Source: Paramoeba atlantica
Lineage: Eukaryota; Protista; Discosea
Reading direction: 5' to 3'
Length of the DNA: 64,000 nt
Assembly (NCBI GenBank): GCA_977017575.1
Contig: CDRNVI010000145.1
Span: forward strand, 1 to 64,000
Made by a program: the position numbers and the translations under genes. The notes below the pieces were generated by a model that worked only from the letters and a program-made list of their open reading frames with translations, did no database searches and was not told where the DNA came from. How positions within the stretch are numbered: position 1 is the first letter of the stretch; each line of letters begins with the position of its first letter. Positions 498 to 22,335 of the stretch are shown here, in pieces.

Positions 498-3400
498 AGA
501 GAGAGAAAGAGAAAGAGAGAAATAAATAAAAATTTGTTCCTTGATTTTTTTCGATTAAACAAAAACATCAAATTCCGATTTCTCTCTTCAGAAGAAGAAA
601 TACAAAAAAAAAAAGAGATATTTTGTTTCATTGATTTATTTATTTTTATTTATTTATTTTTATTAATTAATTTATTTTTATTTTTATTTTTTTAATAATA
701 ATTAATAAAAAAGAAAAAAACCTTTAAAAGATGGTTAGCAAGCTTAATCATAAACATCAAATTCCGATTTCTCTCTCCAGAAGAAGAAATACAAAAAAAA
801 AGAGATATTTTGTTTCATTGATATTATTTATTTTATTTATTTTATTTTATTAATTAATTTAGATTTATTTTTTATTTTTTTAAGATTAATATAATAATAA
901 AAAGAAAGAAAAAGAAAGAAAAAAACCTTTAAAAGATGGTTAGCAAGCTTAATCATAAACATCAAATTCCGATTTCTCTCTTCAGAAGAATCACAAAAAA
1001 GAAGCGATTCGACAACCATTGACGAAATTCGATTGAATGTTTCGCTCATTGCCAGAATGTTTGGCGATCGAAGATATTTTTCTTGTTTCTATTTTGTTTT
1101 TTTTAATTTATTCATTGTTATTTTTTTATTCTTTTTTTAATGAAATAATTATGAAATGGAAAAATTATTGTCGAAAATAATAATAATATTTTCATTTTAT
1201 ATAAAAAGAGTTTACATTTCAAAACAATTCTTCAAAAAAAATAATAATAAAAAATAATAAAAAAAAAAAGAAAAAAAAGAAAATAAAAAATAAAATAAAA
1301 AATAAAATAAAAAATAAAAAAAACCTCCCAAAAACCATCAAAAAACTCTTCAGGTTTGATATTTTTATAAGATTGAAACATAATCAAAGTCAATAATTGT
1401 GCGACATGTTGACTTGATCCGCACAAACTTAAACTCATTCCTTTCCAAATCTGTTGTTTCATGATTTAATATTTATTTAATTAATTAAATATTTTGTTAA
1501 TAATTCATTTTTAATGATTCATTTCTTAATAATTTAATTATGAATAATCGAAATAATTATTATTTAAGATTGAAACATAATCGAAGTCAATATTTGTGCG
1601 ACGTGTTGGCTTGATCCGCACAAACTTAAACTCATTCCTTTCCAAATCTGTTGTTTCATGATTTAATTTCATGATTTAATATTTATTTAATTAATTAAAT
1701 ATTTTGTTAATAACTCATTTGTAATAATTCATTTCTTCATAATTTAATAATTAATCTAAATAATTATTAGAAAGTCAATATTTGTGCGACGTGTTGACTT
1801 GATCCACACAAACTCAAACTCATTCCTTTCCAAATCTATTTTTTCTTATTTGAATTTTTTTTGATTTAATTTTAATAAAATTGAATTAGAAAAAAAATGT
1901 ACCAAAAGTTGGGAGAGTTGAGGGTTGAGGGTATCTAAAAACGTTTCAATTTCTCTAAAAAATAAGAGGAGTGAGAAAAAAGAAAGGAGAAAGAAAAGAA
2001 AGAAAGAGAAAGAAAGAGAAAAAAAGAGAAAGATAAGAGAGAAAGATAAGAGAGAAAGAAAAGAGAGAAAGAAAAGAGAGAAAGAAAAAAAAAGAAAGAA
2101 AGAAAGAAAAGAGAGAAAAGAAAAGAAAGAAAAGAGAGAAAAGAAAAGAGAAAAAAAGAAAAGAAAAAAGAAAAGAAAAAAGAAAAGAAAAAAATAACTG
2201 TGACAAAGGAGGATTAAAAGTTCGATAATAAGGAGTTAAAATTTTTCTCCAAGTAAGAACAATTTTTACAACTTCTTCTTTCGGAGGATCTTCTTCTTCT
2301 TCTTCTTCTTTTTGGACAATTTCTTTCATTGTCTCTAATAATTGAAACTATTTTGTTTGTTTTTTGAGCAAGGAAAAAAAAAGAATGAAAAATGAAAAAA
2401 GAAAAGAAAAGAAAAAAAAAGAAAAGAAGAAAGAAAAGAAAGAAAAACAAAAAATAAAATAAAAAAAAAAACCAAAAAAAAAAATAAACAAAAAAAAAAA
2501 AACCTGATCAATCTCAAAAGTCTGTTCAAAACCGATAAAAAAACTCTCAACTTTCTCAGAAGAAGAAGACAAATCAATCAAATAACGAACAATTTCGAGA
2601 AAAGAATCACAACGAAATCGAGAAGAAGAGAGAGAGAGAGGAGAGAGAGAGAGGTTCTTTTGGGGGGAGAGAGTGGTGTTTGATGAGTAAGAGAGAGGAG
2701 AAGAGAGAGGGGAGAAGGGAGAAGAGAGAGAAGATTGCTGGTGGTGGTGGTGAATAGTAGTAGAAGAAGAAGACAAAGAACAAGTAGAAGAAGAAGAAGA
2801 AGAACGAACAGAAGAAGAAGAACGAACAGAAGAAGAAGAATGAGAAGAAGAAGAATGAGGATGAGAAGAAGAATGAGGATGAGAAGAAAAATGAGAAGAA
2901 GAAGAAGAGAAAGGAAGAGGAGGAGCAGATCTCTTTCTCGAAGAAACAACCTCTCCTCCTCCTCTCGGATCACAAGGACTACTCGATTTCGATTTTTTCA
3001 CCAGATCACAATCTCTCTCTTCTCTCTCTCCTCTCTCTTCATTTACTCTCCCCTTCTTCCCCTTCTTCCCTTTCTCCTCTCTCTCCCCCTTTCCTCCTTT
3101 CTCTCCCTTTCCTCCTTTCTCTCCCTTTCCTCCTCTCTCTCCCTTTCCTCCTCTCTCCCCCTTTCCTTCTCTCCTTTCTTTAGACGGAGAAGAAGACACT
3201 TCAACTTCTCGAGAATTTCCAGAACTTTTCCAAGTTCGAGAAGATCCTGAGAATTCTGGAGGGGGGAGATCTTTTTCCTGGAAGACAATTTTTTATTTTT
3301 GTGTAGAGGGGAAAGGAGAGAGAGAGAGAGAGAGAAAAGAGGGGGGAGAGAAGGGGGAGAGAAAAGAGGGGGGAGAAAGGAGAGAAAGAAAAAGAGAGGA

Positions 3401-4082
3401 GAAAAAAGGAGGAGAAAGAAGAAGGGAAAGAGAAAAGAAAGAGAGAGAGAGAGAAAGAAAGAGGAGAGAGAAAGAGAGACCCAAGAACGAGAAGCACCAC
3501 TCCCAAAGGGGAGAGGGAGACTAAAAGAGAGAAAAGAGGAGAGAAAGGAGAGAGGAGAGAGGAGAAAAAAGAGGAGAGAAAAGAAAGAGAGAGAGAAGAG
3601 AGAAAGAGAGACCCAAGAACGAGAAACGCACTCCCAAAGATCGAAAATCGACTCTTTTTCTTTTTATGAAGAATAAAAGAAGATTTTTTTCTTTTCTTTG
3701 CAAACCCTTGGACATGGAGGATGAAAGGGAAAGGGGAAAGAGAAGAGAGAGGAAGAGAGAGAAAAGAGAAAGAGATACCCAAGAACGAGAAGCACCACTC
3801 CCAAAGATCGAAAATCGACTCTTTTTCTTTTTGTGAAGAAAAGAAGATTTCTTTTTCTTTTCTTGACAACTCTTGGTCATGGAGGATGGAGGGGAAATCT
3901 CTTCCCCTCTGTCACTCTCCTAAAAAAAAAGAAAGAAAGAATCAGAAAGGAAAAAAAAGAAAAAGAAAAAGAAAAAGAAAAAGAAAAAGAAAAAGAAAAA
4001 GAAAGAGAAAGAGAAAGAGAAAGAGAGAGAGAGAAAAAAAAAAAAAAAAAAAAACCCCAGAAGATCTCTTACTCCTCCTCAT
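1..4082 (-). CDS. RasGEF (REM + CDC25 domain) gene, copy 1; multi-exon, 3' end runs off the window; carries internal partial exon duplications
   Basis: Exon peptides FRCDSFLEIVRYL..FFIGFEQTF (REM-like), AQLLTLIMFQSYKNIKPEEF, FNRISSMVVESLL and HNFEGCAAVVSGLNQPPIRRLKPLW match the CDC25 motifs QLTL..F..I...E, FN..S..V and NF....A+...L....I.RL..TW. Putative ATG at 4082 (MRRSKRSSG|gt) is less certain. Confidence 0.85.
255..520. repeat. GA-rich microsatellite/low-complexity intron tract (similar tracts at ~1975-2195, 3315-3620, 3950-4050)
   Basis: Near-pure (GA)n/(GAAA)n runs inside introns; source of the spurious R/E/K- and S/L/F-rich ORFs. Confidence 0.9.
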
Positions 4083-4761
4083 TTGTTGAATAAAATCTTT
4101 TTCTCTCGTTTTTTTTTTTCCCCAAAACCAAAAACCAAAAAAACAAAAATACAAAAAAAATTTTCTCAACCAAACAACGCTCTTTTTCCCCAAACCAAAA
4201 AATCAAACAAAAAACAACAACAAAACAAACCAAAAAAAACAGAAGTTTTTCTCAACCCAATGTTCTTTTTCCCCAAAACCAAAAACCAAACAAACAAAAC
4301 AAAACCAAAAAAAACAGAAGTTTTTCCCACAACCCAACGTTCTTTTTCCCAAACCAAAAAAAACCAAAAAAAAAACCAAAAAAAAGAATTTGGAAGAGGG
4401 ATTTTTCGGCTCACCGGAATTTCCATTTTTGAAATTTCAGGGGAATTTCGAAGAAAAATTTGCGGGGATTTTTCTCTTTTACCCTTATTTGGGTTGTTGT
4501 TTTTTTCTTTGACTTTTTTTAGATTTTTAGATTTTTCTGTTCCGCTGAGAACAGTATCACAAGAATCTGGCTCGAAAAAAAGAGGACAACAGTTTTTCTT
4601 TTTGATTCTTTTCTTTCTTTTCATCAAGAGAAAAATGGAAATTCATTTTTCCTGAAAGGAAGGAAGATAATATTTTTATAAATAGTTTTTTTTTTTTTTT
4701 AAACACAGCCCTCTCAAAAACAGAGAGTTATCGGTTTCCCTCAACTCTTTTTGTCTTCCGT

Positions 4762-7395
4762 CTAAAATTTTGGTGAGACTTTTGTTCCTTGTTCTTTTTT
4801 CGGAGTCTCAAATAAAGAAAGAGATCGTTTGTAACAAATTTCCTGAACATATAAAAATAAGAACAGAAGCAAGGAGAAAATAAAAAAAAGAGAAAAAAAC
4901 CTCAGGAACTGAACGTTTTTGGAAAAATCCAAACAACAAAGAATTTTCACATTCAGGCAATGGATAGGGAAATTGTTGATATTGTAAAAACAAGTTGATT
5001 GATTCTCCAATTTTCTGTTTTTTTTTTTTGTTAAATTCTTTTTTCAAGACTAAATTACAAAAAACAAAAAAATGAAAAAGAAACCATGAGATAAGGTAAA
5101 TTAACAAATCCTTCTTCTGTTTTTGGCTGATTTCCATCGTACAGATATCTTAACTCTCTCAACTGTCAAATTTGTTTTAAAACAACAATGAAAAGATCAA
5201 ATCTTGAAAAATAAAAAGAAAATCAAAAAAAAAGAAAGAGAAAAATACCTTTGGAGCAAACCAAGGAAGAAGAGGTGGTTCTGAAGACTGGAACACATTT
5301 TGATAGTTTTTAAAATTCGATTCAGGAGATAAAATTTCATCCAACAATTCAAATCTCTTTTTGTACTATTTTTTTGTTTTCCATAAATCATTAATATTAA
5401 ACAATTTAAATTCACAAACAAAAAAGAGAAAAAAGAAAGGGAGAAAAATCAAAACTCTCAAATTCAAAGATTCCCACAATGGTTTGAAACGTTGAATTGA
5501 AGATTGATTCAATCCACTTATTACAGCTGCACCTCCCTCAAAATTTCGAAGCTTGTAAAAAAAAAAGGAGTCAAATTTAGAGAGAAAAAAGAGAAACAAA
5601 AGAAGAAACAAAAAAGAAGAAAACCTTGAAAAGTTTGGTTGCAAGTTTGATCATAAACATTAAATTCTGAGAACGATTTTCAGACTCACAAAATAGGATT
5701 GATTCAACAACCATTGATGAAATTCGATTGAATATTTCACTCATTGCCATAATATTTGGTGATCGAATATATTTCTCTCTTTTCTATTTGTAAAATAATA
5801 ATAAAAAAAAAGAGTCAAAGAAAGAAAAACATCAAAAAGAAAAGAAAAAAAAAGGAAAAAAAACCTGCCAAAAACTATCATAAAATTCATGAGGTCTTAA
5901 ATCTTTGTATCTTCGAAACATAAAGGAAGTTAACGTTTGTGCAACATGACGACTCGTTCCACAAGAACTCAAACTCATTCTTCCTTTCCAGATCTATTTT
6001 TCAACAAAAGAAAAAAATCAATAAGAATTTCTGAGGAGCTTAGGAACTCAGGATCTCAGAAGCTCAGGATCTCAAAGAGATCCGCCCTCAACCTCAATTC
6101 AAAGGTTTATCCAATCCAATAGAAAAAGATGTGTTTAGGGTTGGTGGGTTGTTTGAAATATTTGAAGGAAAGAAAAAGAAGAGAAAGAAAAAAAGAAGAA
6201 AAAAAGGACCAAAGTTGATTCGAAAGGGGTTGATTCCAAAGAATCCAAAAATTCTTCAATTGCTCTATTTTTGACAACAAGGTCAATACCCAAAGAATGA
6301 AAGAAAGAAAAAAAGAAAAAAGAAAATGAAAGAAAAACTTGGATAAAAGGGGATTAAAAGTTTGATAAAAAGATGTTAAAGTTTTTCTCCAAGAAAGAAC
6401 AATTTGAATAATTTGTTCTTTCTTTTCGTTTTGTTGTTCCTCTCCTTCTTTTGTGATTATCATCTCTTTCATTGTTTCCAAAAGTTTAAACTATTTTTTG
6501 ATTTTGAGTAATTGGGAATCGTTCATGAGTTGTTTTTTTTTGTGAAAGAGAGGGAGAGGAGAGGAGAGGAGAAAAGAGAAAAAAACCTGATCAATATCAA
6601 AAAAAGATTGTTCAAAACCAATAAAAAAAATCTCGATTTTCTCTGGAGATAAACCAACCAAATAATTTATAATCTCCAAATATGAATCACAACGAAATTG
6701 GGATTCGCTTTCTTCCTCTTCAAAACTCGAAAGAGACAACATGGGATATCGAGGAGAAGGACTTGAAAAAATAGATTTCAAATGGGGAGAAAGAGCTATA
6801 AATGGACTTGGAGAAGAACGGGGAGGAGAGGGAGAATAATGGCCAGAGTGGACAGAAGGAGAAAAACGAGGAGATTGATGAACGGAGTTTGGTTTGGATG
6901 GAGGAAAAGAAGAACTGGGAGTATAGGCAGATTGGGCAGAAGAAGGAAAAGGAAAAGAGTGGTGTGAATTTGGGTCAGAAGCAGAACGAGCAGAGGAGAC
7001 CTTTTTTTCTTCTTGTTGGTAAGAAGGTTTTTTAAGGCACATTTTTCTTCGAAAGCTCTTTTGAACTTCCTCTTTGGTCTTAGATTTGGAGGTGGTTTCA
7101 GGGGGTTGTTCATCAAAATCAAAGATTCCTTTTGGTTGAAGAGGTGGTGTTGAAGAAGGCTGTGGAAGAGGTGTAAAATTTTCCATGAGAAGATCTTTCT
7201 CCTGTGTTGTGAAAGAAAGGGTGAGGAAAACAAGAAAAAAGAATCAAACAACAACAAAAATTGAAATACCCAAGAACGTGAAGGTTGGCCAAAAGGAGGA
7301 CATTCATTCTTTCTTTTGGGGGGAGAAGTGTTACAACCAAGAAAATCAGGACGGAAGCGGGAATGGAGAGCCGTTTTTCGATTCAACTTGTCCAT
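4762..7395 (-). CDS. RasGEF (REM + CDC25) gene, copy 2, apparently complete
   Basis: ATG 7395 (MDKLNRK..PSRSW|gt); exons FRCDSYLEIINYL, FNRISSMVVESIL, LRNFEGGAAVISGLNQSSIQRFKPLW, SNFKNYQNVFQSSEPPLLPWFAPK|LRELRYLYDGNQ..GFVNL and EICYKRSLSLFE; stop at 4762-4764. Confidence 0.9.
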
Positions 7396-7480
7396 TGCTT
7401 GAAACAGACAAAAGAAAAAAACAGAATAACCAGACAAGTTTCAGGGGCTAGGATCACAAATTGCTTCAAAACAATCACAA

Positions 7481-7740
7481 CCAGAAGTCCAAAGCCCTCT
7501 CCCAGTGTCTCCGTTTGCACTGTTCTGCGGTCGTTCCGGTCCCAAAAAAAGCAACAAAACAAGACCAACAAACAGACAAAAGAAAAAAACAGAAAAAACA
7601 GACAACCCACCCAGAAGTCCAAAGCCCTCTCCCAGTATCTCCGTTTGCACTGTTCTGCGGTCGTTCCGGTCTCAAAAAAGCAACAAAACAAGACGACCAA
7701 CAAAACACCAAAACAAGAAAAAAGCGCAATGGGTCCAAAA
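7481..7740. repeat. 130-bp two-copy tandem duplication upstream of RasGEF copy 2
   Basis: ccagaagtccaaagccctctcccagt[g/a]tctccgtttgcactgttctgcggtcgttccggtc starts at 7481 and at 7611; the period is not a multiple of 3. Confidence 0.9.
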
Positions 7741-8356
7741 ACAAAAAAGGAAAACAAAACGTGCCTTCTCAAAAAACAAAAACGCTTATTACCAAAAGTT
7801 GAAGCGTTGAATTAGGTTAGAAATTTTTTGGAATGAGGCGTTTTTGTTTTTGCCAAATCAAAAATAGGGTTCAAAAACGTATTAATAGGGTCCAAAAAAA
7901 ATTAGCCCAAATGATTTCCCTAAAATTTTTTTCCCCGCACACTAGAAATGGATGAATGGATAAAATAAAAGGATGGTTTGATAATTGAATGGATGATTTG
8001 AGAGAGATTTTTGGATTCAAGGGGTTGGTTGATTCTTTTTTTTGAAATCTTTTTATTTACAATGACTTTTTATTTTCGACACACCAAAATTTCTTTTTTT
8101 TCGTTCTTTCTTTCGATCAGTTGAGTTGTACTACTTTCAAGCCTCAAACAGATCAATCACAGGAAGACTCGAGATGGTTTACAAGGCCTTTTTAGAAAAA
8201 GGAAAACTAAAAAAGAAAACACGTCTTTCTTCAAGAACAAGAACGTTCAACGGACACTTACAAATAAAGACATTCAAAACAAGACAACCCCTCAGGTTCA
8301 AATCCCAAACAAACAAACATTCTTTCAAAACACTTCAGGTGACAACCCAATACAAT

Positions 8357-11079
8357 CTAACCCTTCTCAAGTAAAGAAAGAGATTGTTTGTAACAAATTT
8401 CCTAAACATTTTCCATCAAAATGATGTGAGTCTCGAAAAAAAAAAAAGGGTATTTTGAAAGAGAAAAAAACCTCAGAAATTGAACGTTTTTGTAAAAATT
8501 TCAACAATAATGTATTGTCAGGAGAATGGGGAAAATCGTACCAAAATTGTTGATATTGTAAAAACGAGTTGATTGATGATCCAATTTTCTGTTTTTGTTA
8601 CTTTTCGTTCAGTCCTTTTTCAAAACGAAATTTACAAAAAACAAAAAAATGAAAAAGAAACCATGAGATAAGGTAAGCTAACAAATCCTTCTTCTGTTTT
8701 TGCTTGATTCCCATCGTACAAATATCTTAACTCTCTCAACTGTTTAAATCATCAGTTGGTTTGAAAACAAAAAGAAAAATAATAGTAAAAAATAAATAAA
8801 AAAAAATAAAAAAAAAAGAGAAAAACACCTTTGGAGCAAACCAAGGAAGAAGAGGTGGTTCTGAAGAATGTAACAAATTTTGATAGTTTTTAAAATTCGA
8901 ATCAGGAGATAACATTTCTTCAAACAACTTAAATCTCTTTTTGTACTATTTTTGTTTTTATCAATATTTACAACAATTTAAATTCACAAACAAAAATAGA
9001 AAAAGAAAAAACAAAACTCTTGAATTCAAAAGTTTCCACAATGGTTTTAAACGTTGAATTGAAGATTGATTCAATCCACTTATTACAGCACCCCATCCCT
9101 CAAAATTTCGAAGCTTGTAAAAAAAAGAGTCAATTGAAAGAAGAGAAAGAAGAGAGAAAGAGAGAAACGAAAAAAGAAACAAAGAAAAAGAGAAAAAAAA
9201 GAAAAAAAGAAGAAAACCTTGAATAATTGAGTTGCAAGTTTGATCATAAGCATTAAATTCTGAGAACGATTTTCAGACTCACAAAATAGAATTGATTCAA
9301 CAACCATTGATGAAATTCGATTGAATATTTCGCTCATTGCCATAATATTTGGAGATCGAATATATTTCTCTTCTTTCTATTTGTCAAAAAAGTTCATTTA
9401 AAAGAGTCAAAGAAAGTAAAACATCATAGAAAAAAAAAGGAAAAAAACCTGCCAAAAACCATCATAAAATTCATGAGATCTTAAATCTTTGTATCGTTGG
9501 AACATCATGGAAGTTAACATTTGTGCAACATGACGACTCGTTCCACAAGAACTCAAACTCATTCTCCCTTTCCAACTCTATTTTTTTCAACAAAAAATTA
9601 AAAAATCTCCAAAAAGAGAATTCAAATAATCCCAGGAAAGACCTCAGGCATAAAAAAAAAAGAGAGAAAAAGATGTGTTTAGGGTTGGTGGGTTGTTTTA
9701 AATATTTGAAGGAAAGAAAAAGAAGAGAAAGAAAAAAAGAAGAAAAAAAGGACCAAAGTTGATTCGAAAGGGGTTGATTCAAAAGAATCCAGAAATTCTT
9801 CAATTGCTCTATTTTTGACAACAAGGTCAATCCAAAGAAAGAAAGAAAGAAAGAAAGAAAAAGAATAGAACTTGGATAAAAGGGGATTAAAAGTTTGATA
9901 AAATGGTGTCAATATTTTCCTCCAAGAAAGAACAATTTGAATAATTTGTTCTTTCTTTTCATTTTGTTGTTCCTCTCCTTCTTTTGTAATTATCATCTCT
10001 TTCATTGTTTCCAAAAGTTTAAACTATTTTTTGATTTGATTAATTGGGAATTGTTCAAAAAAAGAGAAAAGAGAGAGAAAAAGAAAAAGAGAAAGGAAAA
10101 GAAAAGAGAAAAGAGAAAAAAACTTGATCAATATCAAAAAAAGACTGTTCAAAACCAACAAAAAAATCCTTGATTTTCTCTGGAGATAAACCAACCAAAT
10201 AATTGAGAATATCCAAATATGAATCACAACGAAATTGACATTCGCTTTCTTCTTCTTCTTCAAAACTCGAAAGAGAGGGAGATGGAGGAGAAGAACTTTG
10301 ATTAGAAAAAATAGATTTCAAACGAGGAGAAAGAGCTACAAATGGACTTGAAGAAGAAGAAGGAACCACAAATGCACCAGAAGAAGAAGAAGAGAGAGGA
10401 GATCGACGAAAAGGCAATTTAGATGGAGGAGAAGAAGAAGAAGAAGAGGGAGAATCATAATCGGCTTGGACAGAAAAATATGGAGGTGATGGAGAATGAG
10501 AACGAGCAGAATCAGGTGCTTTGGTAAAACGAGGGGATTTACAAAAATATTCAGAAAGAGTAGAAGCAGAAGAGATTTTTTCTTCTTGGAGAGAAGGGAG
10601 TTTTTTCAGTAAAATTTTTTCCCGAAAGCTCTTTTGATCCTCCTCCTCTTTGATCTTTGATTTGATGGTGGTTTCAGGGGGCTGTTCATCAAAATCAAAG
10701 AAGTCTTTTTGTTGAAGAGATAGCGCTGAAGAAAATTGATTAATGTGAAGATCTTTGTCCTGTGTGTGGCGGAAAGAAAGTGTGAGGAAAACAAGAAAAA
10801 GTAATTGAAAAAAAATTGAACAAAAATATCTTACCCAAGAACGAGAAGTTGAGACAAAAGGAGGAATAAGTTCATTCTTTCTGTTGGGTGGAGTTTTACT
10901 CTCAAAAATAGATTTCAACCCTTTCTTTTTTGGGGGGGATTTTGAATCTCTCCTCCGCCCAGAAGGGGCCTAAAAAAAAACAAAAACCATTTTTCGATTT
11001 AGAATTCAAAAAGAGCTGAGAGATTTTGGGAGAACAAACTTACCGAATCAGAAAGTGAAACAGTAGGAAAACGTCTCAT
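8357..11079 (-). CDS. RasGEF (REM + CDC25) gene, copy 3, apparently complete
   Basis: ATG 11079 (MRRFPTVSLSDS|gtaagt), exon APSGRRRDSK..; same conserved RasGEF exons as copy 2; last exon EICYKQSLSLLEKG* with stop at 8357-8359. Confidence 0.9.
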
Positions 11080-11769
11080 TCCTCTCCGAAAACAAAAACC
11101 AAAAAAATGAACGTTCCAACCCCAACGTCTTGACGTTCCCGAAAACTCATCGAAATTTCAATGATATCCCACGAAAATTTATGATGTTTCCGAAATTTTT
11201 TGGCTTTTTGCGTCTGATGTGAAAATTAGTTCAAAAGAGATGAGTTCAAAAAAAATCACAAGGAAGAGGGGGCGTATCCTTCGTTCTTATCTGGTGATTG
11301 GACATCAGTGAACCATCTTGCTTGGGGAGATAGGATCCACACCTCTCGTCCCCCATCTCTGACGGCAACAAACACTGGTGGCATGATGACCTCAAGCAGC
11401 TCGAAGGTAACCGCCCTATCAGCTCCAAACCGACCCCCAGGTTCCGAAAAGAGAGAGGACCTTGCAGAAGACCGACTGAGAGCACCTGAAAAAATTCAAC
11501 ACTGTCAAAAAAGTGTCTCTCAAGTATCCCGAAAACCTCTCTGGTTGAGAACCATAGGATGTCCTAATTTTCAAAAAAATTTGAAGTCGTGACTTTTTTC
11601 TTTGTTTTTTTTTTTGAGTTTTGTGATTTTTCTTGTGGAAGCTGCTGTGTAGAGAAACAAAGAGAAAGTCTTTGACGATTAAATCGCAATCATTTTTAGT
11701 TTTTCTGACTCTACAACTCTTTCACCAAGAACGTGAACAACTCCTTCCTCCTCCCCCTCCTTATTATCC

Positions 11770-12738
11770 ATGGAAGACTCTCCCATTCAAAAAAAGAAAA
11801 GAAAGAAGAGGTCAGGACTTCTCAGACTGGTACGATATCTAAAAACGAATACAAAGCCAACATGGGAGCCCAACCCAAATTGTCTTCGTGTTAATAGCTC
11901 AGCTTATTTACAAGTTGAGCGACAGGGAAAGTGGTGTTATCGGGCCCATTTTCTCAAGGAAGTATTTACTCGCGATGAAATGAAGGATTTTCAACAAGCT
12001 CTGTTGGCCTGTCGTGAGACACATTGGGATCATTCAAATGACCCAACAAGAGGGGAGAGAGCCTTTATGTTTTGTGGTGAATGGAGGCAACGAGGTCACT
12101 CCACGATCCACCCTGCTGGAATTGGGGGGCGTTATGAAGCTGAAGTGAAGCCAGTTCTGCAACCTTGTCTTGAAAACCTTGGGCGAACACTTTCTCAGAG
12201 GGTTCAAAGATATCGACCAGATATTTGGAATTGTTTAGAGGAAAACAACTTGCTGGAACGAAATTTTGGAATCTTTCACTTATTTATGTGTCCTGCTGGA
12301 AGATCAATTATGCATTACGACAGGAATGATTTTATTTCTGTTTTGGTTATGATCCATTTGGATGATGACCAACAAGGTGGGCTTGAGATTGGGGGTATTG
12401 ATCTTGCTTTTAATTTAAAAATTGGGGATGTTCTCATTTTGGACACTGACCAACTGTGTCATGGAACAGAAGAAGGTTATGACGATAGTTTGGAAGATGT
12501 TTTGTCTGTTTCTGCAACCGATAGATTGGTTGGCCTTTTTATTATCCACCGATCTTATTTACGACTTTTTGGTGTTGATCCAAACACTCTTTGCCGGGAG
12601 AAAATTGAAGCTCTGACCATCCCTGTACCTCCTCCACTGAAAAAGAGAGAGAAAGTGGGGGAACAAACCCCCTCTTGTCCTTCTTATTGTAACAAACTCT
12701 CCTCCTCCTCAACAACCTCTCCTTTCTCCAAAAAATAA
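11770..12738 (+). CDS. TET/JBP-type 2OG-Fe(II) dioxygenase, 322 aa, single exon, N-terminal basic NLS-like stretch
   Basis: HxD (HYDRND, H at 12313), GGL-x-GDVLILD strand, distal His (LCHGT, 12460) and 2OG-binding Arg (DRLVGLF, 12523); KKKRKKR near the N-terminus; in-frame stop at 11734-11736 upstream of the ATG. Confidence 0.8.
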   Translation: MEDSPIQKKKRKKRSGLLRLVRYLKTNTKPTWEPNPNCLRVNSSAYLQVERQGKWCYRAHFLKEVFTRDEMKDFQQALLACRETHWDHSNDPTRGERAFMFCGEWRQRGHSTIHPAGIGGRYEAEVKPVLQPCLENLGRTLSQRVQRYRPDIWNCLEENNLLERNFGIFHLFMCPAGRSIMHYDRNDFISVLVMIHLDDDQQGGLEIGGIDLAFNLKIGDVLILDTDQLCHGTEEGYDDSLEDVLSVSATDRLVGLFIIHRSYLRLFGVDPNTLCREKIEALTIPVPPPLKKREKVGEQTPSCPSYCNKLSSSSTTSPFSKK

Positions 12739-12792
12739 AAATAAAATAAAAAGAGGAAAAAAATGGTTTGGGTTGTGTTTGTTTCTGTGGTT

Positions 12793-13580
12793 TTATTGGC
12801 TCTGATTTTTCTCAGCTGCAAGTGAAACAATAAGATTGGAGACTTCTGAACGTTCTTTGTTTTTGGTGAACCATGATTGAGTCAGAAAACTATCTGGTTT
12901 TTCCTCCTGGCTCAAATGCAACAGAAATTCCTCAACATATTTCATGACAAAGACTCCACAATCCACATCATTTTCCTGTTGGGGTACAATGGGTTTCACC
13001 ACTTCCAATCTTTCCAATCTCCCCAATCTCTTGGGAAGAAAGTTTGACTGAAAAAGCTTCTTGATTTTTTCAATAACAGTGTCGACACGGTGTGACAAAA
13101 ACCCTCTCATTGAATCAAGGTGCCACATTTTTTGTTCTGGGATACTAAGAACGAATAAAGACCAATGGGAATCCTTAATGTTGAAAGGAAGAAACAAATA
13201 GTCGATTTTATCATAGTCCAAGAACCAGCGTGAAAGAATTGAATAATCGTGTTCCAAATTCTCCAACTTGGTGAGAAAGAATGTAGAGAGACAGAGAAAT
13301 GAGAAGGCAGTTGTTTGTTTGTTCTACAAAATAAAATTAAAAAAAAAATTAAAAAAAAAACCCTTTAAAAAAAAAAACCCTTTAAAAAGTAAAAAAATGA
13401 AAAAACAAATACTTTCATCAAATACTTCAAGTAGAAATCAATTAGTGAATCATTCAAATAAGCGTTAGATACCAAACTATTGAGATCCTTTGGAAAAATT
13501 TCAACAGAAGACCTATCGAGATTAGGGTACAGTAAAATTCTTTTTTGTGGGTCAGAGGATAAAAACTTCTCCGTTTCAGG
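12793..13580 (-). other. Ulp1/SENP (peptidase C48) deSUMOylase-like domain
   Basis: LLYP..DLNSL..AYLNDSLIDFYLKYL, STFFLTKL, LPFNIKDSHWSL (His), HLDSM (Asp), PQQENDVDCGVFV (Gln, Cys); triad intact. Confidence 0.92.
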
Positions 13581-16500
13581 CTATTTTATTTGTGGTGAGC
13601 AGATAACAGAAAAAAGAGAAGAGAAAAATGAGAAACCAACCAAAAAAGAATACGATTTTTTAAAGTTCAGTTGTTCTGAATATTTACGCAGCCCTGTTGT
13701 GAAATTCCTTTTCTCTCCCTCTCTCTGCCTTTCCTTTTTTTCTCTTACTTTTTTCTCTTTTTCTCTCTTGATTTTCTCTCTTTTTTTTTTCTCTCTCTCT
13801 CCCTCCCTCTCTCTCTCCCTCTCTTTCCTCTCTCTTTCCCTTTCTCTTTCCTTCTCCTCTTCTCTCTCACTTTCCCAAGTTGTTTTACTTTCCTCCCTCT
13901 TCCTCTTCCTCTTTCCTTCCTCCTCCTTCCCTTTCTCTCTCTCCTTCTCCTTCTCCTTCTCTTCTTTCTTCACCTTGTTCTCCCTCTTCTTCCCTTTCCC
14001 CTCCCTTCTTACAATTTTTTTCTCAACATAAAAATCCACCAAAAATTGAGAAAGGGATAATTCTGGCAGTACCCTCTTTAAAATTCTCTCGTCAGGTTTC
14101 CTGGCATCAGATGATGTGGCTTGGCGATATTCTTCATTTGGTGCATTTTGGACCAGGTGAATTTTGAGTTTCGCATTTTCGGTTTTGTATTTTTCATAAA
14201 GAAATTCAACAATTTTCAGTTGAACCCGTGCATCAAGTAAAGCATCATGGCATTTTCCCCGTAATGATCTATCAATCGAAAATGTTGTACAAATATGGTC
14301 GACACTCCATTTTGGGTAACGATCCAAAGAGCCTTTGTCTCGTCCAATCTCGAAATATAACTCCTTGCTATCAAAAAATCGTACAAATGAAGGAACCTGA
14401 ATCCCATAACGCTGACAGTCATTCTTCAATGTTGGTTCATCGCAACCCTTACCATTATGAGCAATCATCATCACAAGTGGTTTTTCTTTTGTCCGGAGAA
14501 GATTTAAAAATCGAAAAAATCGAGGAAAGACTTGATCAAATGTATCCCTTTTTCGGAGAAACTGATGTGACAATCCGTGAATGTTGTAAGCCTGGGAAGT
14601 TATTGGAATCTCCTCCCCTATTGTTTTTGGTATTGTGAGTTGTATTTCTAATTAAAAAGAAAAAAGAGAAAAAAGGAGAAGAGAGAAGAGAGAGGAGAAG
14701 AAAAAATACCTGGATTAATTGCTTCATGAAATTCAAGTTTTTTTTTGGATGACTCTCCAAATTTCCAAGCAACAAGGGCAAGAGAAACAAATGATTGCTT
14801 ATTACTTCCCTTCGTTTTACCTGTTGTCTCACCATCCCAAACAACAAACCCACCAAAACAGTTATCATCCTTTTTACCAACTACACTTTTACAAAATTCC
14901 TCCACACTTTCACAAGATGCATCCTCAATTTCAACCACACTTTCACAAGATCTGTCCTCAATTTCAACCACTTGTCCTTCGAGGCTTGAGAAGTCTGGTT
15001 CATTTGGAGGAGTAAGAGTGACATTCGAATTCTTTGATGTTTCAGTTGGAAATGGATGTTCACCACTATGTCTTTTAACAAGATGGTTATTTAAATAGCC
15101 AAGAAATCGGTACTGTTAATAATTATTGTATTAGAAAAAAAAAAAGAAAAAAATTCTTGAATTTTCCTTCTTGAAAAAAAAAAAAAAAATCCAAACTTGC
15201 TTTGGGCAATCTTCCCATGGACATGGATAAAGTTGTGATGGGAAAGAATCAGATGTTTGAAGCGTTTGAACAATTCGATGTGATTCATCACCTCCAACAA
15301 CTAAGCAGGTCATTTGTCGAGTTGTCAATCTTTTTCGGGTGCAACGGTATGCATCAGCAATCATTTTAGCAAGAGCAACTTGCTCTGGAGTTGCAGATGG
15401 AAACAGAGAAGAAGAAGATTTTTTTCTTTTCTCCTTAGTATAAGAAATCAACGAAGAAAGCTCAGAGAAATCAAAGATAACTCCTGTTTGGTCATTATAC
15501 TTCAAAGCAGATTTCTTGCCAAGAGTGCGTTTGGGCATGGCATACAACCGATTTGGGGAGAATTTTTTGATCAATTCAATCCATCCATGTGACTCTAAAA
15601 AAGCATACTCATAAAGAGATGGGTATCGGATCTGTAGAAAAAGACAAAAAAACAAAAGAAAACACAAAGAAAAATGATATAAGATGAAAGAAAAATGACC
15701 AAAGGATAGAGGAGGTAAACAAAAAGAGAGGAAGAGGGAAAAAAATATTGGAGAAAAGAGCATAAAAGAAAAGAAGGTGTAAAAGAGAAAAAAGAAGAAA
15801 AGAAAATAATAAATAAACAAAAACCTTGCTTCGAATCACAGAAAAGTGATTTTCACACAAATTGGTTCCTAACATTGATGTTCTTCGATGGGTCATAAAA
15901 TACACATCTTCTTTCTTCAAAAAGGTGACTAAGTTGTTTAAAGTCTGAAGAGTCTATTGAAAAAAAAAAAAAAGAGATAAATAACATTTTTGCAAAAACA
16001 ATTTTTGGGAAAACAATTAGACCACAAAAGTTGAAAAGAGAGTGTGTGGTGTGTCATGTAATTCATTTAATTAAATAATAAATAATAAATCAATTGAAAG
16101 AAAATAAAATACCTGGTTAAAGAACTCTGTGGTTGTAAACTGTCTTTTTGATTGGGCCTGGTAGGTCTCGAGTCGTTTTATCAATCCTGTTGCTGTCTCA
16201 ATCTTACAATCAATGTCCCAAGAGTTGTTTGAAAAAAGATCATGAAGACAAAGCAACATTTCAAGATACTTGACAAGAGCAAAGACTTTCTTTTTTTCCC
16301 TTTCATTCGCAGTGTTCTGACCAAATTCCTTGATTTTGGTGGCAGCACGGAGCAAATTCATCACAGGGACAAGATTTTGCTTATCTGATGGACATATATC
16401 ATCTAACTTCAAAGCAAGTTGTAATTCAACGGAATTGGACCACCAGTTCGAGAGGGTTTTCATCGAAAATTTCACTCCATCAATTTGAATCAGTCGATTG

Positions 16501-18750
16501 AGTAAGTTATTTCGACCATTCTTGACCAGATGAACATAATCAAAAAAATGTAAAACATCCTTCATTTTCGTTGAATAATCAAGAGAACCTGAAAATCCAT
16601 CAGAGCTGGTCCACATAACAACGATTTCCTTTTCCTTCATTTCATTTGAGATCTTTGTAAACACTTCAAACAGCTGGGTCCCTGTCAGCGATATTGTTGG
16701 AATAAATGTAACTGGGAATGCAATGGTACCACAATTCGAAATAAAAAAAATTTGACACACCTATTAATACTTTTGTTTTAAAACAAAAGAAAAAGAAAAA
16801 GAGAGAAACACACAAACAACAACAACTAGTGTTTTAGTTTTAGTTTTTTGTTTGTGTATATTTTTAAGGATTTATGAAAACAATTATTTGGAAAACAAAA
16901 CAAAAAAAACCTTCTTTGCAAGTTCTGGTGTATAGTCAACCAATAGATTTGGATCCAATTCGCAATCTTTTAAATATTTGTCAACAAGACCCACAAACCG
17001 TCCTGATGTACGTAAATATACAAGACCAGATCTGATCTCCATTTCATCACAAATGAGCCCACCTCCTTGAAGATCATGGCCATCGATTCGTTGTTTTTTG
17101 AGCATTTGAACAAGGATCTGAATCCGTTGGGTAACTTGAGCACCTTTATCATCAAACCATTGATAAGGCTCAACAGGAGGAATGAGTCGACGGAGAGTTG
17201 AATCAGCTGGAATACAGAGGTTTGTTGTTTTAAGATCATAATGAAAATCCCCTTTTTTTCCCTCGCATCCTTTACCACGCAAAAGATTAATCACTCGCTT
17301 ACCCCCATAAAACTGAAGTGTTGCAAAGAAATTTAAAATCTCTTGGTCCCATCGATTTCCATTTGGAGTATTGTTCAAAAGCACCTCAAGTTGGGTTTGA
17401 ATAAATTTCCCATTGAAGGAGTTCACCCATTCATCACCATACTGTTCAATGACTTGATGTACAAGAAGAGAGAGAGGATGACAAGAGGCTGGAGGCTGTT
17501 CTTGGTTCTTCTATTGGAACACAAGCAAAATAAAGTCAGTTAAAAAATCTTTACTTTTTTATCATACAGGATGATATTTTTTTAAAAAGATCTCAAAAAA
17601 AAAAGACAAACACATACCATTAAATATTCTTGATTTGCATTCCACTTTTTCAAGTATTGGATTGCTTGGTGACATGAGGGACAAAAGCGACCTGCAGCTG
17701 AAGAACTACCTTCTTGACGAACCTTCACAGAATCAAAAGAAAAAAAATGTAAATATTTCTTTTCCTATCCACCACACACACTATCCCCATTCCATCATCA
17801 TCATCACACAAATCATCCCTCATCAATAAATATTTTATCAATAAAAAGAAATAGATAAAAAAAGAGAACCCGTTCACAAAATGAAAAAAAAAGTTTTCCA
17901 GCTTGAAGAACTCCAATTACTCTGGACCCAGACTTCGATTTCTCCGCTATATATTTCCGCTTCACAACTCCATCAGAATCTGCAATTCTTTGTGCATTCT
18001 GAACAACTGTCGCAGTATCAGAGATTCCAGGGCACAAATCATGGTGATGATCATCAATAAACTCAAAAAAGGGGGAAAAGAATAATGGCTTCTCCTCCTC
18101 CTTTGTAATCATCATTGGTTCAGGACTCAACTCACTCCTGTCATGGGCAAGCCCCACCTTCTGATGTTTCTTCCTTCTTCTAAAAAAGAAAAATGGGGGT
18201 AAGAAAAATATTTCATTTTTCCCCTCAAATACACTTTTTTTTCTCAAAAAACACTCTCAGTGAACACTAAAAAAGAAAAGAACACCACTTACCTTCTGGG
18301 TGGTGGCAACCCAACTTCAAACAAAGTTGTTTGCTTCCAAGTTCTTTTTAGAAGATGATGACAAAATGATTGGATAAAGGGATCCAATCTTGGTTTGATT
18401 CCAGTGGAATGTTTCAGAGGGTATTTTTTCCAGTTCCTCACCCTTTTGACATCAAAGAGTTTAGATATCAATGGTGGGATATAAGTGGAAAATTTTGCGC
18501 TCTCAATTGATCGAATCTCTGGGCAACATTGAGAACATTTCGCGACAATCTCATTAAATGAGATCGCATCATACTCCTTCTCATCCTCACTCAACTTGTC
18601 AAAATGATGGTAAAGGGTCAGTGCAAGGTATTGGTAAACAACAAGAAACTCACGTTTCTTTGGGAGTCCATCAGGGATTAAATCCATTTTTCTCTCTTGG
18701 AAACACTGTGAAAAAGGAGAGGGAAGTTCAGTCAACTGAGAATAGTGGCA
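12793..18750 (-). CDS. Spliced polyprotein (>=1601 aa): N-terminal region, P-element-type transposase, C2H2 finger, DEDDh exonuclease, KE-rich linker, Ulp1/SENP protease; start codon unresolved upstream of 18750
   Basis: Exons 18750-18293, 18179-17870, 17764-17618, 17510-16911, 16760-16113, 15953-15825, 15631-15197, 15112-14710, 14617-13641, 13580-13413, 13323-12793. All introns are GT..AG, all phases are compatible, total 4806 nt with no internal stop. Confidence 0.85.
14200..14850 (-). other. DEDDh 3'-5' exonuclease domain
   Basis: ExoI VVWDGETTG (D ~14835); INPG|EEIPITSQAYNIHGL across the splice; ExoII IAHNGKGCD; ExoIII HDALLDA. Confidence 0.88.
15065..15225 (-). other. C2H2 zinc finger split by an intron
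   Basis: CPWEDCPKQ|YRFLGYLNNHLVKRH (C-x4-C-x12-H-x4-H), formed only by the 15197/15112 splice. Confidence 0.75.
15500..17400 (-). other. P-element/THAP9/Galileo-type transposase catalytic region
   Basis: FYGGKRVINLLR..PADSTLRR; ICDEMEIRSGLVY (D ~17047); TSSDG (D ~16600); FDYVHLVKNGRNNL; DKQNLVPV; LGTNLCENHFSVIR (E ~15853). Order and spacing fit the P-element DD-E fold. Confidence 0.85.
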
Positions 18751-19187
18751 CTAATTTTAAGAAAAAAAAGAAAGGGAAACCAAAAACTACAGAAGATCCA
18801 ATTTCAAGTGTGTTTTCACTGCAGAACTCCACCAGTGTTTGGAGGACAATGAAAGAGGGGAGAGGGTGGGGGTTGTTTCAGGGTGGAACCACACTCTGAG
18901 TGTTGATGAGATCTTTTGGTCTGGTGGAGAGTAGTCAAGAGTTTGTAGATGCTGAAAATTGGAATTTTTGCAAGTAATTTTAATTATTTGTTCACGATAT
19001 TTGTTCCTTCTCAAAGATTTGCAGGGAACAGAAACTCTCAAGGAATTTCTGATCACAACAGCACAAGCAGACCAAACTTTCAAGAACAAATGAATCACCA
19101 CAGAATCTCCAAAATCTTGACCACAAACCAATTTTCCTATCTCTCACTTGTTGTATGGTGCCAACCCTTTCGCAAACCCACAGCAGA

Positions 19188-19255
19188 TTCGCCCAGTTTC
19201 GCCCAGTTTCGCCCAGTTTCGCCCAGTTTCGCCCAGTTTCGCCCAGTTTCGCCCA
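19188..19255. repeat. 10-bp tandem repeat (GCCCAGTTTC)x6 plus partial unit
   Basis: Six perfect units at 19191-19250 followed by gccca; GC-rich in AT-rich context, upstream of the transposase gene. Confidence 0.95.
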
Positions 19256-19623
19256 ATGCCACACCAACGAAAGTTCGTTCTTTTTCGTGACCTTCGCTCA
19301 AATGAATCCCAATATTTCACTGAGATTGAAAGAATCCTATGATAATCAAAACGTCAAAATCACATTCCTGAATTGGATGTCAAAGAAACTCTTGGTCATT
19401 TGGCTTGAGTTAGAACCCCGTGAAAAATTTAGCCAAAATGGTTGCCCTAAATTTTTTTTCCTTTCCTTTCCTCCCACAAAGAAATGGATTGAAGAAATGG
19501 GTTCGATTGAGATTTTGAATCAAGGTGAATCTTTTTGAAATCTTTGTTTGTCAATGATGACATTTTATTTTACTCCTTGATCCACTCAAAATGAAAATAA
19601 ATTGATTTCTTTCTTTTGATCGC

Positions 19624-22335
19624 TCAACTCATCTCAAATAAAGAAAGAGATTGTTTGTAACAAATTTCCTAAACATTAAAAACTATGTGAGTTTTGAAAA
19701 AGAGAGAAAGAAAAGAAAATATTTGAAGAGAAAAAAACCTCAGGAACTGAACGTTTTCGTAAAAATATCAACAACAAAGAATTGTCAGAAGGATGGGGAA
19801 AATCATATCGAAATGATTGATATTGCAAAAATGATTTGATTGATTCTCCAATTTTCTGTTTTTGTTACTTTTTATTAATTCTTTTTTTCAAGACGGAATA
19901 AAACAATAAAAAATAAATGAAAAAATGAAAAAGAAACCATGAGATAAGGTAAATTAACAAATCCTTCTTCTGTTTTTGATTGATTCGCATCATATAAATA
20001 TCTTAACTCTCTCAACTGTTCAAATCATCAGTTAGTTTGAAAATAATAAAAAAAAATAAAAAAAAAATTAAAAAAAAAGAAAGAGAAAAATACCTTTGGA
20101 GCAAACCAAGGAAGAAGAGGTGGTTCTGAAGACTGGAACACATTTTGATAGTTTTTAAAATTCGATTCAGGAGATAAAATTTCATCAAACAATTCAAATC
20201 TCTTTTTGTACTATTTTTGTTTTCATCAATATTTACAACAATTTAAATTCACAAACAAAAAAATAGAAATAGAAAAAAATAAAACTCTTGAATTCAAAAG
20301 TTTCCACAATGGTTTTAAACGTTTAATTGAATATTGATTCAATCCACTTATTACAGCTGCACCTCCCTCAAAATTTCGAAGCTGTCAAAAAAGAGTCCAA
20401 AATATTAAGAAATGAGAGAGAGAGAGAAAGAAAAGAGAAATAAAAGAAGAGAGAAGAGGAGAAGAACCTTTAACAATTGAGTTGCAAGTTTGATCATAAA
20501 CATTAAATTCTGAGAACGAGTTTCAGATTCACAAAATAGGATTGATTCAACAACCATTGATGAAATTCGATTGAATATTTCACTCATTTCCTTAATATTT
20601 GGTGATCGAATATATTTCTCTTCTTTCTACATGTTTAACAGAGTCAAAGAAAGAAAAACATCAAAAGGAAAAGAAAAAAAAGGAAAAAAACCTGCCAAAA
20701 ACCATCATAAAATTCATGAGGTCTTAAATCTTTGTATCTTCGAAACATAAAGGAAGTTAACATTTGTGCAATATAGTTACTCGTTCCACAAGAACTCAAA
20801 CTCATTCTTTTCCAAATCTATTTTTTTCGACAATTAGAATTTCTGAGGAGCTTAGGAACTCAGGATCTCAGGAACTCAGGATCTCAAAGAGATCCGCCCT
20901 CACCCTCAATTCAAAGGTTTATCCAATCCAATAGAAAAAGATGTGTTTCGGGTTGGTGGGTTGTTTTAAATATTTGAAGGAAAGAAAAAGAAAAAAAGAA
21001 GAAAAAAAAGACCAAAGTTGATTCGAAAGGGGTTGATTCCAAAGAATCCAAAAATTCTTCAATTGCTCTATTTTTGACAAGAAGTCAATACCAAAGAATG
21101 AAAGAAAGAAAAAAAGAAAAAAGAAAATGAAAGAAAAACTTGGATAAAAGGGGATTAAAAGTTTGATAAAATGGTGTTAATATTCTCCTCCAAGAAAGAA
21201 CAATTTGAATAATTTGTTCTTTCTTTTCATTTTGTTGTTCCTCTCCTTCTTTTGTAATAATCATCTCTTTCATTGTTTCCAAAAGTTTAAACTATTTTTT
21301 GATTTTGAGTAAATTGGAATCGTTCATTTGTTGTTTTTTTTTGTTAAAGAGAGGGAGAGGAGAGGAGAGGAGAAAAGAGAGAAAAACCTGATCAATATCA
21401 AAAGATTGTTCAAAACCAATAAAAAAAATCTCGATTTTCTCTGGAGATAAACCAACCAAATAATTGATAATATCCAAATAAGAATCACAACGTAATTGAT
21501 CGCCTGAATCAGAAAAAGAGAGAAGAGAGGGAGAAGAAAGAGGAGGAGGAGAAGGAGGAGGAGAATCTTGAGTTGAAAAAAGAGATTTCCAACGAGGAGA
21601 AAGAGCTAGAAGTGGACTTCCAGAAGAAGGAAAATCTGATTGGGAGGAAGGATAAGAGAAAGGAGATAGGGACAGAAAAGAGAGGCGTGAACTTGAAGAA
21701 CGAGGCGATGTGCAAGATGAAGGAGAAGGAGTGAGAGCAGGAAGTGATTGGAGAGAGGGAGGAGATTTGGGTTGAGGAGAATGAGAACGAGGGCGGATCA
21801 CACCCTCTTCTTGTTGTGATGGGAGAGAAGAGATTTTTTTCATGAAAAGTTTTGCGTGGGAGCTCTTTCGGTTCTCCTCTTTGGACTTTGCTTTGGTTAT
21901 TCTGGGGTTCCCCTGGTCAAAATCTTCGTCTTTTAGTTGGAGGTACTTTGGAGGAGGAAAAGGTTCAGTGGTTGTTGTCTGTGAAAGAGGGATGAGATCA
22001 AAAAGAAAGAAAGAAAAAAAAAAAGTGGTTCATTTTTACCCAAGAAGGCGAAGATGGGACAGAGACAGAACGTTCCTTTCGTCCGGCTTTCTTTCTTTCG
22101 TCCTTTCTTTCATGGAGAGTTTTACTGCGAACTTTCTTTCTCTCTTTCTTCTTTCTTTGGGGGGGTTCTTTTCCCTCAAGGTCCGACTTCCCAAAATCCA
22201 GTTCCTAAAGATGAGAAAAAGAAAAACAAGATGAATTTTGAGGCAGAGATCAAACTGAAGGGAAAAAAAAACTCTCACCAAAGAAACAGAAAGTGGGCTG
22301 GATGGGAGAGTGTTTTGTCTCGTTCGTTTTTCCAT
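19624..22335 (-). CDS. RasGEF (REM + CDC25) gene, copy 4, apparently complete
   Basis: ATG 22335 (MEKRTRQNTL..SVSL|gt), exons ELDFGK..SPSW| and TTTTEPF..LRCDSYLDIINYL; conserved CDC25 exons; last exon EICYKQSLSLFEMS* with stop at 19624-19626. Confidence 0.88.

Follow-up and report, generated by a model that had tools for sequence, protein, structure and literature searches.

The 64,000-nucleotide (nt) window analysed here (positions 1 to 64,000 of the forward strand of contig CDRNVI010000145.1 of Paramoeba atlantica; eukaryotic, AT-rich sequence) carries on its minus strand what is probably the principal gene of a cut-and-paste transposon of the P superfamily, recently active and present in several copies, with an 11-exon mRNA and a multi-enzyme transposase of 1549 amino acids (aa) as its product. 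Read from its N-terminus, the predicted chain would hold an N-terminal region without a recognised fold, a split RNase H core of P-element/THAP9 type with an alpha-helical insertion, a C2H2 zinc finger, a DEDDh exonuclease, a spacer with a Lys/Glu-rich linker, and a C48 (Ulp1-type) protease. That transposase, finger and exonuclease form a single conserved polypeptide is strongly supported by homologous proteins, and the Ulp1 tail quite likely belongs to the same chain through a spliced intron 9. The original prediction had all four activities on one spliced protein: for the first three this is borne out by uninterrupted open reading frames (ORFs) of relatives, and for Ulp1 it is likely on indirect grounds.

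A predicted 11-exon gene on the minus strand

The gene model runs from an ATG at 18687 to a stop codon at 12795-12793, in 11 exons (Table 1) that join to an unbroken reading frame of 4650 nt (1549 codons and the stop). The ten introns, of 60-198 nt, all have GT..AG ends, and eight of them are in phase 0; the exons are drawn from open stretches in three frames. The in-phase, stop-free joining of 11 exons with GT-AG introns had been predicted and was rebuilt from the sequence, with the junctions 15197/15112, 14710/14617 and 13641/13580 and the exon 13580-13413 at identical positions. The total of 4806 nt given with that prediction was not reproduced, the rebuilt length being 4650 nt from the first ATG or 4713 nt from 18750. 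A permissive search for GT-AG paths at the locus yields thousands that are stop-free, so such a path is weak evidence alone, and the gene model was therefore tested by other means.

Table 1 Features of the transposon copy, its spliced gene and the convergent ORF in the window
Feature	Position	Strand	Remarks
Transposon copy	11556..19425	-	~7.87 kb; 98.7% identity to L005 over 7886 nt; homology ends at both coordinates
5' terminal inverted repeat	19407..19425	-	TTTCACGGGGTTCTAACTC read inward
Subterminal tandem repeat	19184..19255	+	10 bp x 7.2 (CAGTTTCGCC); 5 units in L005
Exon 1	18293..18687	-	ATG 18687-18685; N-terminal region without known domain
Exon 2	17921..18179	-	Basic and acidic stretch; in phase; homology gives no validation
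Exon 3	17618..17722	-	C-x2-C motif
Exon 4	16911..17510	-	Start of P-type RNase H core; D408 at 17048-17046
Exon 5	16113..16760	-	D507 (16601-16599) and insertion domain with FDYVH..K..RN motif
Exon 6	15825..15953	-	Catalytic E703 (15854-15852) in ENxFSxIR motif
Exon 7	15197..15631	-	C-terminal part of transposase; first half of C2H2 finger (C849, C854)
Exon 8	14710..15112	-	Second half of C2H2 finger (H867, H872); exonuclease motif I (D950, E952)
Exon 9	13641..14617	-	Exonuclease motifs II and III (D1051, H1115, D1120), 69-codon spacer, Lys/Glu-rich linker 13979-13707; putative donor 13640
Putative intron 9	13581..13640	-	60 nt, GTTGGT..ATAG
Exon 10	13413..13580	-	N-terminal part of C48 domain (LNDSLIDFYLKYL)
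Exon 11	12793..13323	-	Catalytic part of C48 domain (H1426, D1443, Q1489, C1495) and stop codon
TET/JBP-like ORF	11770..12738	+	322 aa, intronless, convergent, inside the repeated unit

Transposase, finger and exonuclease are joined in relatives

A HMMER search was run with the exonuclease exon, and the spliced model was then compared by blastp with 51 retrieved proteins. The HMMER matches were headed by P0001, the bare ORF of this locus, followed by P0002 (952 aa) and P0003 (849 aa) and by weaker DEDDh exonucleases. Both P0002 and P0003 are single uninterrupted ORFs on their own contigs, with Pfam TNP-like_RNaseH_N in front and RNase_T at the back. Residues 250-1108 of the model (exons 4-9) align with residues 5-899 of P0002 in one high-scoring segment pair (34% identity, E 1e-149), and the match to P0003 has 36% identity (E 3e-146). 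In an alignment of model residues 241-1200 with the relatives, the junctions of introns 4 to 8 all fall in continuously aligned sequence, and no gaps occur at introns 4, 6 and 7. Since the model aligns in a single piece to intron-free homologues, these five junctions are validated.

Two of them restore motifs that had been predicted to appear only upon splicing. Across 15197/15112 the finger C849-x4-C854/x12-H867-x4-H872 (the slash marks intron 7) aligns continuously with the relatives, and the eight of them that align at this junction retain all four ligands; the split halves gave no Pfam match when the exons were searched singly. Across 14710/14617 the segment NP/..I..A..HG is likewise continuous in the relatives' alignment over intron 8.

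A word-indexed search with P0002 returned 25 clusters of uncultured eukaryotes, many of which have both domains; they come from JGI and ENA metagenomes, Logan assemblies and the EukProt transcriptome of Pompholyxophrys. With so many uninterrupted ORFs among the relatives, the transposase-finger-exonuclease order is a conserved architecture and no accident of this locus. Searches of a set of 5.8 billion proteins with the Ulp1 exon and with the exonuclease exon retrieved only this genome's own copies, and an exact search of JGI metagenome contigs for the spliced exon 9/exon 10 junction and for an exon 10 word gave no match.

In one member of the family, P0068 (1392 aa), a SAP domain follows the C2H2 finger and precedes the exonuclease, an order of SAP and DEDDh that recalls ERI-1/3'hExo.

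Identity of the domains

The presumed catalytic residues of the transposase, D408 (in DEMEI), D507 (SSDGF) and E703 (ENxFS), occupy invariant columns of the family alignment, within the family motifs DE(I/M)EI, S(S/T)DGF and ENxFSxxR. They would be the counterparts of D230, D303 and E531 of the fly enzyme. Exon 4 scores 20.7-21.1 bits against Pfam TNP-like_RNaseH_N (cut-off 24.6), and homologues that align over 860 aa reach 50.6 bits. The fold was assigned on the homologue P0002 in place of the window protein: among PDB entries, the AlphaFold model of this homologue is best matched by the P-element transposase of Drosophila (6pe2/6p5a), over ~520 columns (6pe2_A, E 9.4e-14, template modelling (TM) score by target 0.59; 6p5a_A, TM 0.62). 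The family sequence profile did not reach the P-element chains (6p5a) in the PDB, which the fold search alone reached; it matched exonucleases and, weakly, the YY1 finger (E 0.0018).

The C-terminal domain of the P0002 model matches Pol III epsilon (TM 0.80), ERI2/3, TREX1/2 and 3'hExo. In the window protein the DEDDh set is complete, with D950-x-E952 in motif Exo I, D1051 in Exo II and H1115-x4-D1120 in Exo III. Among the exonuclease-bearing relatives, motifs I and II are kept in 11 of 11 and motif III in 10 of 11, the sequence of P0073 ending earlier. Against Pfam RNase_T, exon 9 by itself scores 19.5 bits, and relatives reach 51 bits.

For the protease, Pfam Peptidase_C48 matches exon 11 with 80.5 bits (cut-off 20.7) over profile positions 65-192. 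Exon 11 aligns with residues 69-185 of yeast Ulp1 (1euv), and exon 10 alone with residues 28-63 of 1euv and 19-62 of SENP7 (3eay; E 2e-4), in agreement with the SENP6/7-like exon of the prediction. The residues H1426, D1443, Q1489 and C1495 are in place. Exons 10 and 11 are collinear with the solved Ulp1/SENP structures, so intron 10 splits one intact C48 domain, and the Ulp1 part is, as judged from these alignments, a real domain divided over the two exons. Comparison with relatives and with solved structures thus establishes the exon structure at junctions 4-8 and 10.

Exons 1-3 gave no Pfam domain and no PDB match. In relatives, an ORF of ~800 aa lies directly upstream on the same strand (L001, 382-2778; L002, 721-3156); the two ORFs are related by homology (E 6e-84), without any Pfam match, and their AlphaFold model is poor (pLDDT 33). 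In P0057 the C-terminal half of this upstream ORF is in frame with the transposase, and given this fusion the full protein of the relatives may have ~1750 aa. Exon 1 has a weak hhalign match to the N-terminus of the upstream ORFs (E 0.03), and by eye the C-x2-C motif of exon 3 resembles their C-x2-C tail. The idea that the upstream ORFs of L001 and L002 are TET-like was dropped as unsupported, hhalign against the TET-like ORF of the window having given nothing.

Copies, termini and decay of the transposon

Exact-sequence look-ups led to four contigs (L003-L006) of one ENA assembly. L004 is the same locus in an independent assembly, with an identical gene and four homopolymer differences outside it. 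L005 holds a second full copy, a full element of ~7.94 kb at 656-8596, and L003 and L006 hold degraded partial copies, that of L003 consisting of the TET-like gene and the linker-Ulp1 part only. On the side of the TET-like gene, L005 and L003 run 75 bp beyond the window copy, which has therefore lost one terminus; the ends of L005 and L003 on that side are the inverted complement of the 5' terminus, TTYCACGGGGTTCTAACTC, over 13-19 bp. At the level of sequence, the locus is established as a transposon with several copies. A generic repeat finder gave low-complexity matches only.

The two full copies were compared by class of sequence. Between the window and L005 the exons differ by 11 substitutions in 4650 nt (six synonymous, five non-synonymous) and no indels, the introns by 12 substitutions in 1245 nt and two indels (2 and 3 nt), and the other non-coding element DNA by 11 substitutions in 1016 nt and three indels. 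The exons are ~4x less diverged than the non-coding sequence (11/4650 versus 23/2261, Fisher p 5e-5).

The degraded copies (L003 9231-11667 and L006 1-2860, compared with window 11556-15113) differ almost wholly by C>T and G>A. In L003 these make up 155 of 179 changes (87%). Half of the CpG sites are changed in the degraded copies, against 7-19% of the other C contexts, and the GC content is down to 27%. The pattern looks like methyl-cytosine deamination, or a process like repeat-induced point mutation, acting on silenced copies.

The 10-bp CAGTTTCGCC repeat near the 5' end occurs at one end of the element only and may be an array of binding sites. The element is flanked by three copies, 78-84% identical, of a 2-2.5-kb unit (window 4806-7325, 8359-10893 and 19626-21629); it sits within a spacer of this tandem gene array, and the spacers are too diverged for reconstruction of the empty site.

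The probable link between exonuclease and Ulp1 and alternative readings

The joining of the Ulp1 tail to the exonuclease is considered likely because a separate start codon is lacking, because codons past the exonuclease stay open, and because the arrangement is conserved in L005. On the coding strand there is no ATG in any frame from ~14140 to 13581. The frame of exon 10 is closed directly upstream by a TAG that is the acceptor's own, and no Met precedes the C48 domain within the exon. Past the exonuclease, 69 codons of ordinary composition are open in the gene frame only, and 0.5% of shuffles are free of stops (p ~0.005); P0002 stops ~30 aa past exonuclease motif III. Intron 9 is T-rich like the validated introns, and its donor is no worse than GTTTGG, the donor of the validated intron 7. 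In L005 no splice site is lost and the 1549-aa frame is open throughout; the two full copies both have an undamaged Ulp1 triad.

Several observations weigh against the reading of a four-activity transposase in a P-type transposon. In the 25-cluster family no relative outside this genome carries C48/Ulp1, and all end soon after the exonuclease; the exonuclease-Ulp1 link is thus peculiar to this element and is where the claim is most vulnerable. The donor of intron 9, GTTGGT, is weak, and no other intron is as short. The Lys/Glu linker consists of purines only and has no stop in any frame, so that nothing can be concluded from its openness, and there are 34 in-frame donor/acceptor pairs, some with better GTAAGA donors that would remove the linker. 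One RNA-like run holds just 17% of the words. The homology of L003 starts exactly at the first codon of the linker, a codon that reads GTG in the window but ATG in L003, and this ATG could hint at a once-independent Ulp1 gene. As to the element, no target-site duplication is readable among the copies, none of which has both ends intact. The TNP-like (~21 bits) and RNase_T (19.5 bits) scores of the window lie under the curated cut-offs, so family membership rests on the homologues, and no THAP match was found in exons 1-3 (Pfam, E up to 1).

These points give room for a shorter protein. With intron 9 retained, the TAG at 13583-13581 would end the chain 19 codons into the intron, without Ulp1, and the gene caller's 295-aa ORF P0001 ends at that same codon; isoforms with and without Ulp1 may both exist. 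It is conceivable, and in our estimate improbable, that the transposase-finger-exonuclease ends at this TAG or at an earlier poly(A) site, with the Ulp1 exons being a separate unit or an untranslated captured fragment. Such an ending would agree with the Ulp1-free relatives and the weak donor of intron 9, and also with L003, where linker-Ulp1 and the TET-like gene stand without a transposase and begin at an ATG. However, the simplest view of that ATG is a mutation derived within a copy truncated at its 5' end, because GTG to ATG is a G>A change of the kind that, together with C>T, dominates L003. The lack of any ATG from ~14140 to the C48 domain, the 69 normal codons open past the exonuclease, the triad kept in both full copies and the equally weak donor of the homology-validated intron 7 also speak against it. 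A fusion through another junction is distinctly unlikely: here the Lys/Glu stretch would be intronic, spliced from a GTAAGA donor at 14012 or from 13748 to the acceptor at 13581, and the protein would be ~56-144 aa shorter with its four activities kept. These donors are closer to the GTAAG consensus than GTTGGT and in phase with the acceptor of 13580, and the linker, made of purines only, shows no independent coding signal; but the validated introns are T-rich and 84-193 nt long, whereas the linker is purine-rich and the introns would be 168-432 nt, and no indel separates the copies in this slippage-prone stretch. By far the least plausible view is that the locus is no transposon gene but a host gene after domestication, or an artefact of assembly. 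The missing target-site duplication and the lost terminus of the window copy would agree with it, but four copies lie on different contigs, two of them 98.7% identical, and they have their ends in common and inverted termini; an independent assembly of the locus shows no difference in the gene, and the degraded copies are hypermutated.

A convergent TET/JBP-like gene

Within the element, the TET/JBP-like ORF ends 54 nt from the stop codon of the Ulp1 exon. Tet_JBP clusters are nearest to it in a language-model comparison (score 0.95, 71 of 100 matches), and by this match it probably encodes a TET/JBP-type dioxygenase; the ORF had no Pfam or PDB sequence match. The ORF is intact in the window; at 12010, L004 has a 1-nt homopolymer difference and L005 a 2-nt insertion. 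Because L004 differs at the same locus, the integrity of the ORF depends on which assembly is right.

Relation to known transposons and possible functions

By its sequence, the element belongs to a clade of P-type transposases with an exonuclease, and its accessory modules are each known on other transposases (Dada, Ginger/Mutator and fungal TET elements). With the Drosophila P-element and THAP9 it shares the split RNase H DDE core and the helical insertion domain, as seen in the best fold (6pe2/6p5a) of the 34%-identical homologue, and it has short terminal inverted repeats. Several family members score above the Pfam cut-off for TNP-like_RNaseH_N, and exon 4 of the window scores just under it. 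It differs in that no THAP was detected and that C2H2, DEDDh and probably Ulp1 are added at the C-terminus. The limited library searched yielded no account of a DEDDh exonuclease on a P-type transposase.

A 3'-5' DnaQ-like exonuclease built into a eukaryotic DDE transposase is also a feature of Dada, for whose DEDDy exonuclease, inside the DDE transposase, processing of cleaved 3' ends was proposed (Kojima & Jurka 2013, PMC3706591). Dada belongs to another superfamily and has its DEDDy domain within the catalytic core, whereas the domain here is DEDDh and C-terminal, after a zinc finger. A C48 Ulp1 domain at the C-terminus of a DNA transposase occurs in Ginger1 and Mutator, where a SUMO/ubiquitin-linked role in repair or regulation was suspected (Bao et al. 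2010, PMC2836005); both are of other superfamilies, and neither pairs Ulp1 with an exonuclease. One study reports TET/JBP-carrying DNA transposons in fungi only, among KDZ, hAT, Harbinger, IS3EU, EnSpm, ESTA, Plavaka and Helitron elements and not in P (Kojima 2025, PMC12730594). They too have a TET/JBP-like gene beside the transposase gene, for which a counter-silencing role was proposed; the element here is P-type and non-fungal, and its TET assignment was made by language-model match alone.

In P-elements the transposase cleaves the 3' strand right at the end of the transposon and its partner strand 17 nt further in, so that 3' extensions of 17 nt remain; GTP is required, and duplications of 8 bp are produced (PMC7776569). 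With the neighbouring finger as its guide, the exonuclease could process the 3' single-stranded ends from such staggered cleavage, at the donor or at the transposon ends. A finger-tethered DEDDh domain (finger and SAP in P0068) would be in a good position to trim 3' single strands, either at the donor break or in aborted intermediates. The exonuclease residues are invariant across the clade, which supports a role under selection, and together with the clade-wide fusion this argues that end-trimming may be part of movement or of donor-site repair. An ERI-1-like role against small RNAs may also be considered, because the fold matches include ERI and 3'hExo. The natural fusion of transposase and exonuclease offers a direct handle on the processing of the unusual 17-nt 3' extensions of P-elements.

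The Ulp1 domain and the TET/JBP-like gene would be later, lineage-specific gains that might act on SUMO-dependent and cytosine-methylation-dependent silencing or repair by the host. For Ulp1, deSUMOylation of host factors and self-processing can both be conjectured. Between the transposase and the finger-exonuclease part lies VVGG (aa 823-826, 15301-15290), and relatives without Ulp1 have no Gly-Gly at that position; that this is a self-processing site of the protease is speculative. A broader scheme, which we regard as rather doubtful, would have the exonuclease obligatory and finger-guided in a protist clade of P-superfamily transposons, processing the enzyme's own staggered 3' ends; together with the SUMO protease and TET gained in this genome, it would give the element a complete set of tools for repair and against silencing, in a host where methylated copies are hypermutated. 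Ulp1 and TET-like genes amid dead copies with CpG-biased C-to-T hypermutation provide a test case for transposon counter-defence outside fungi.

A different pairing was seen in P0044 (1036 aa), a piggyBac-type transposase (DDE_Tnp_1_7) with an N-terminal RNase_T-like region (17.7 bits, under the Pfam cut-off), which may be a second, independent combination of a transposase with a DEDDh domain.

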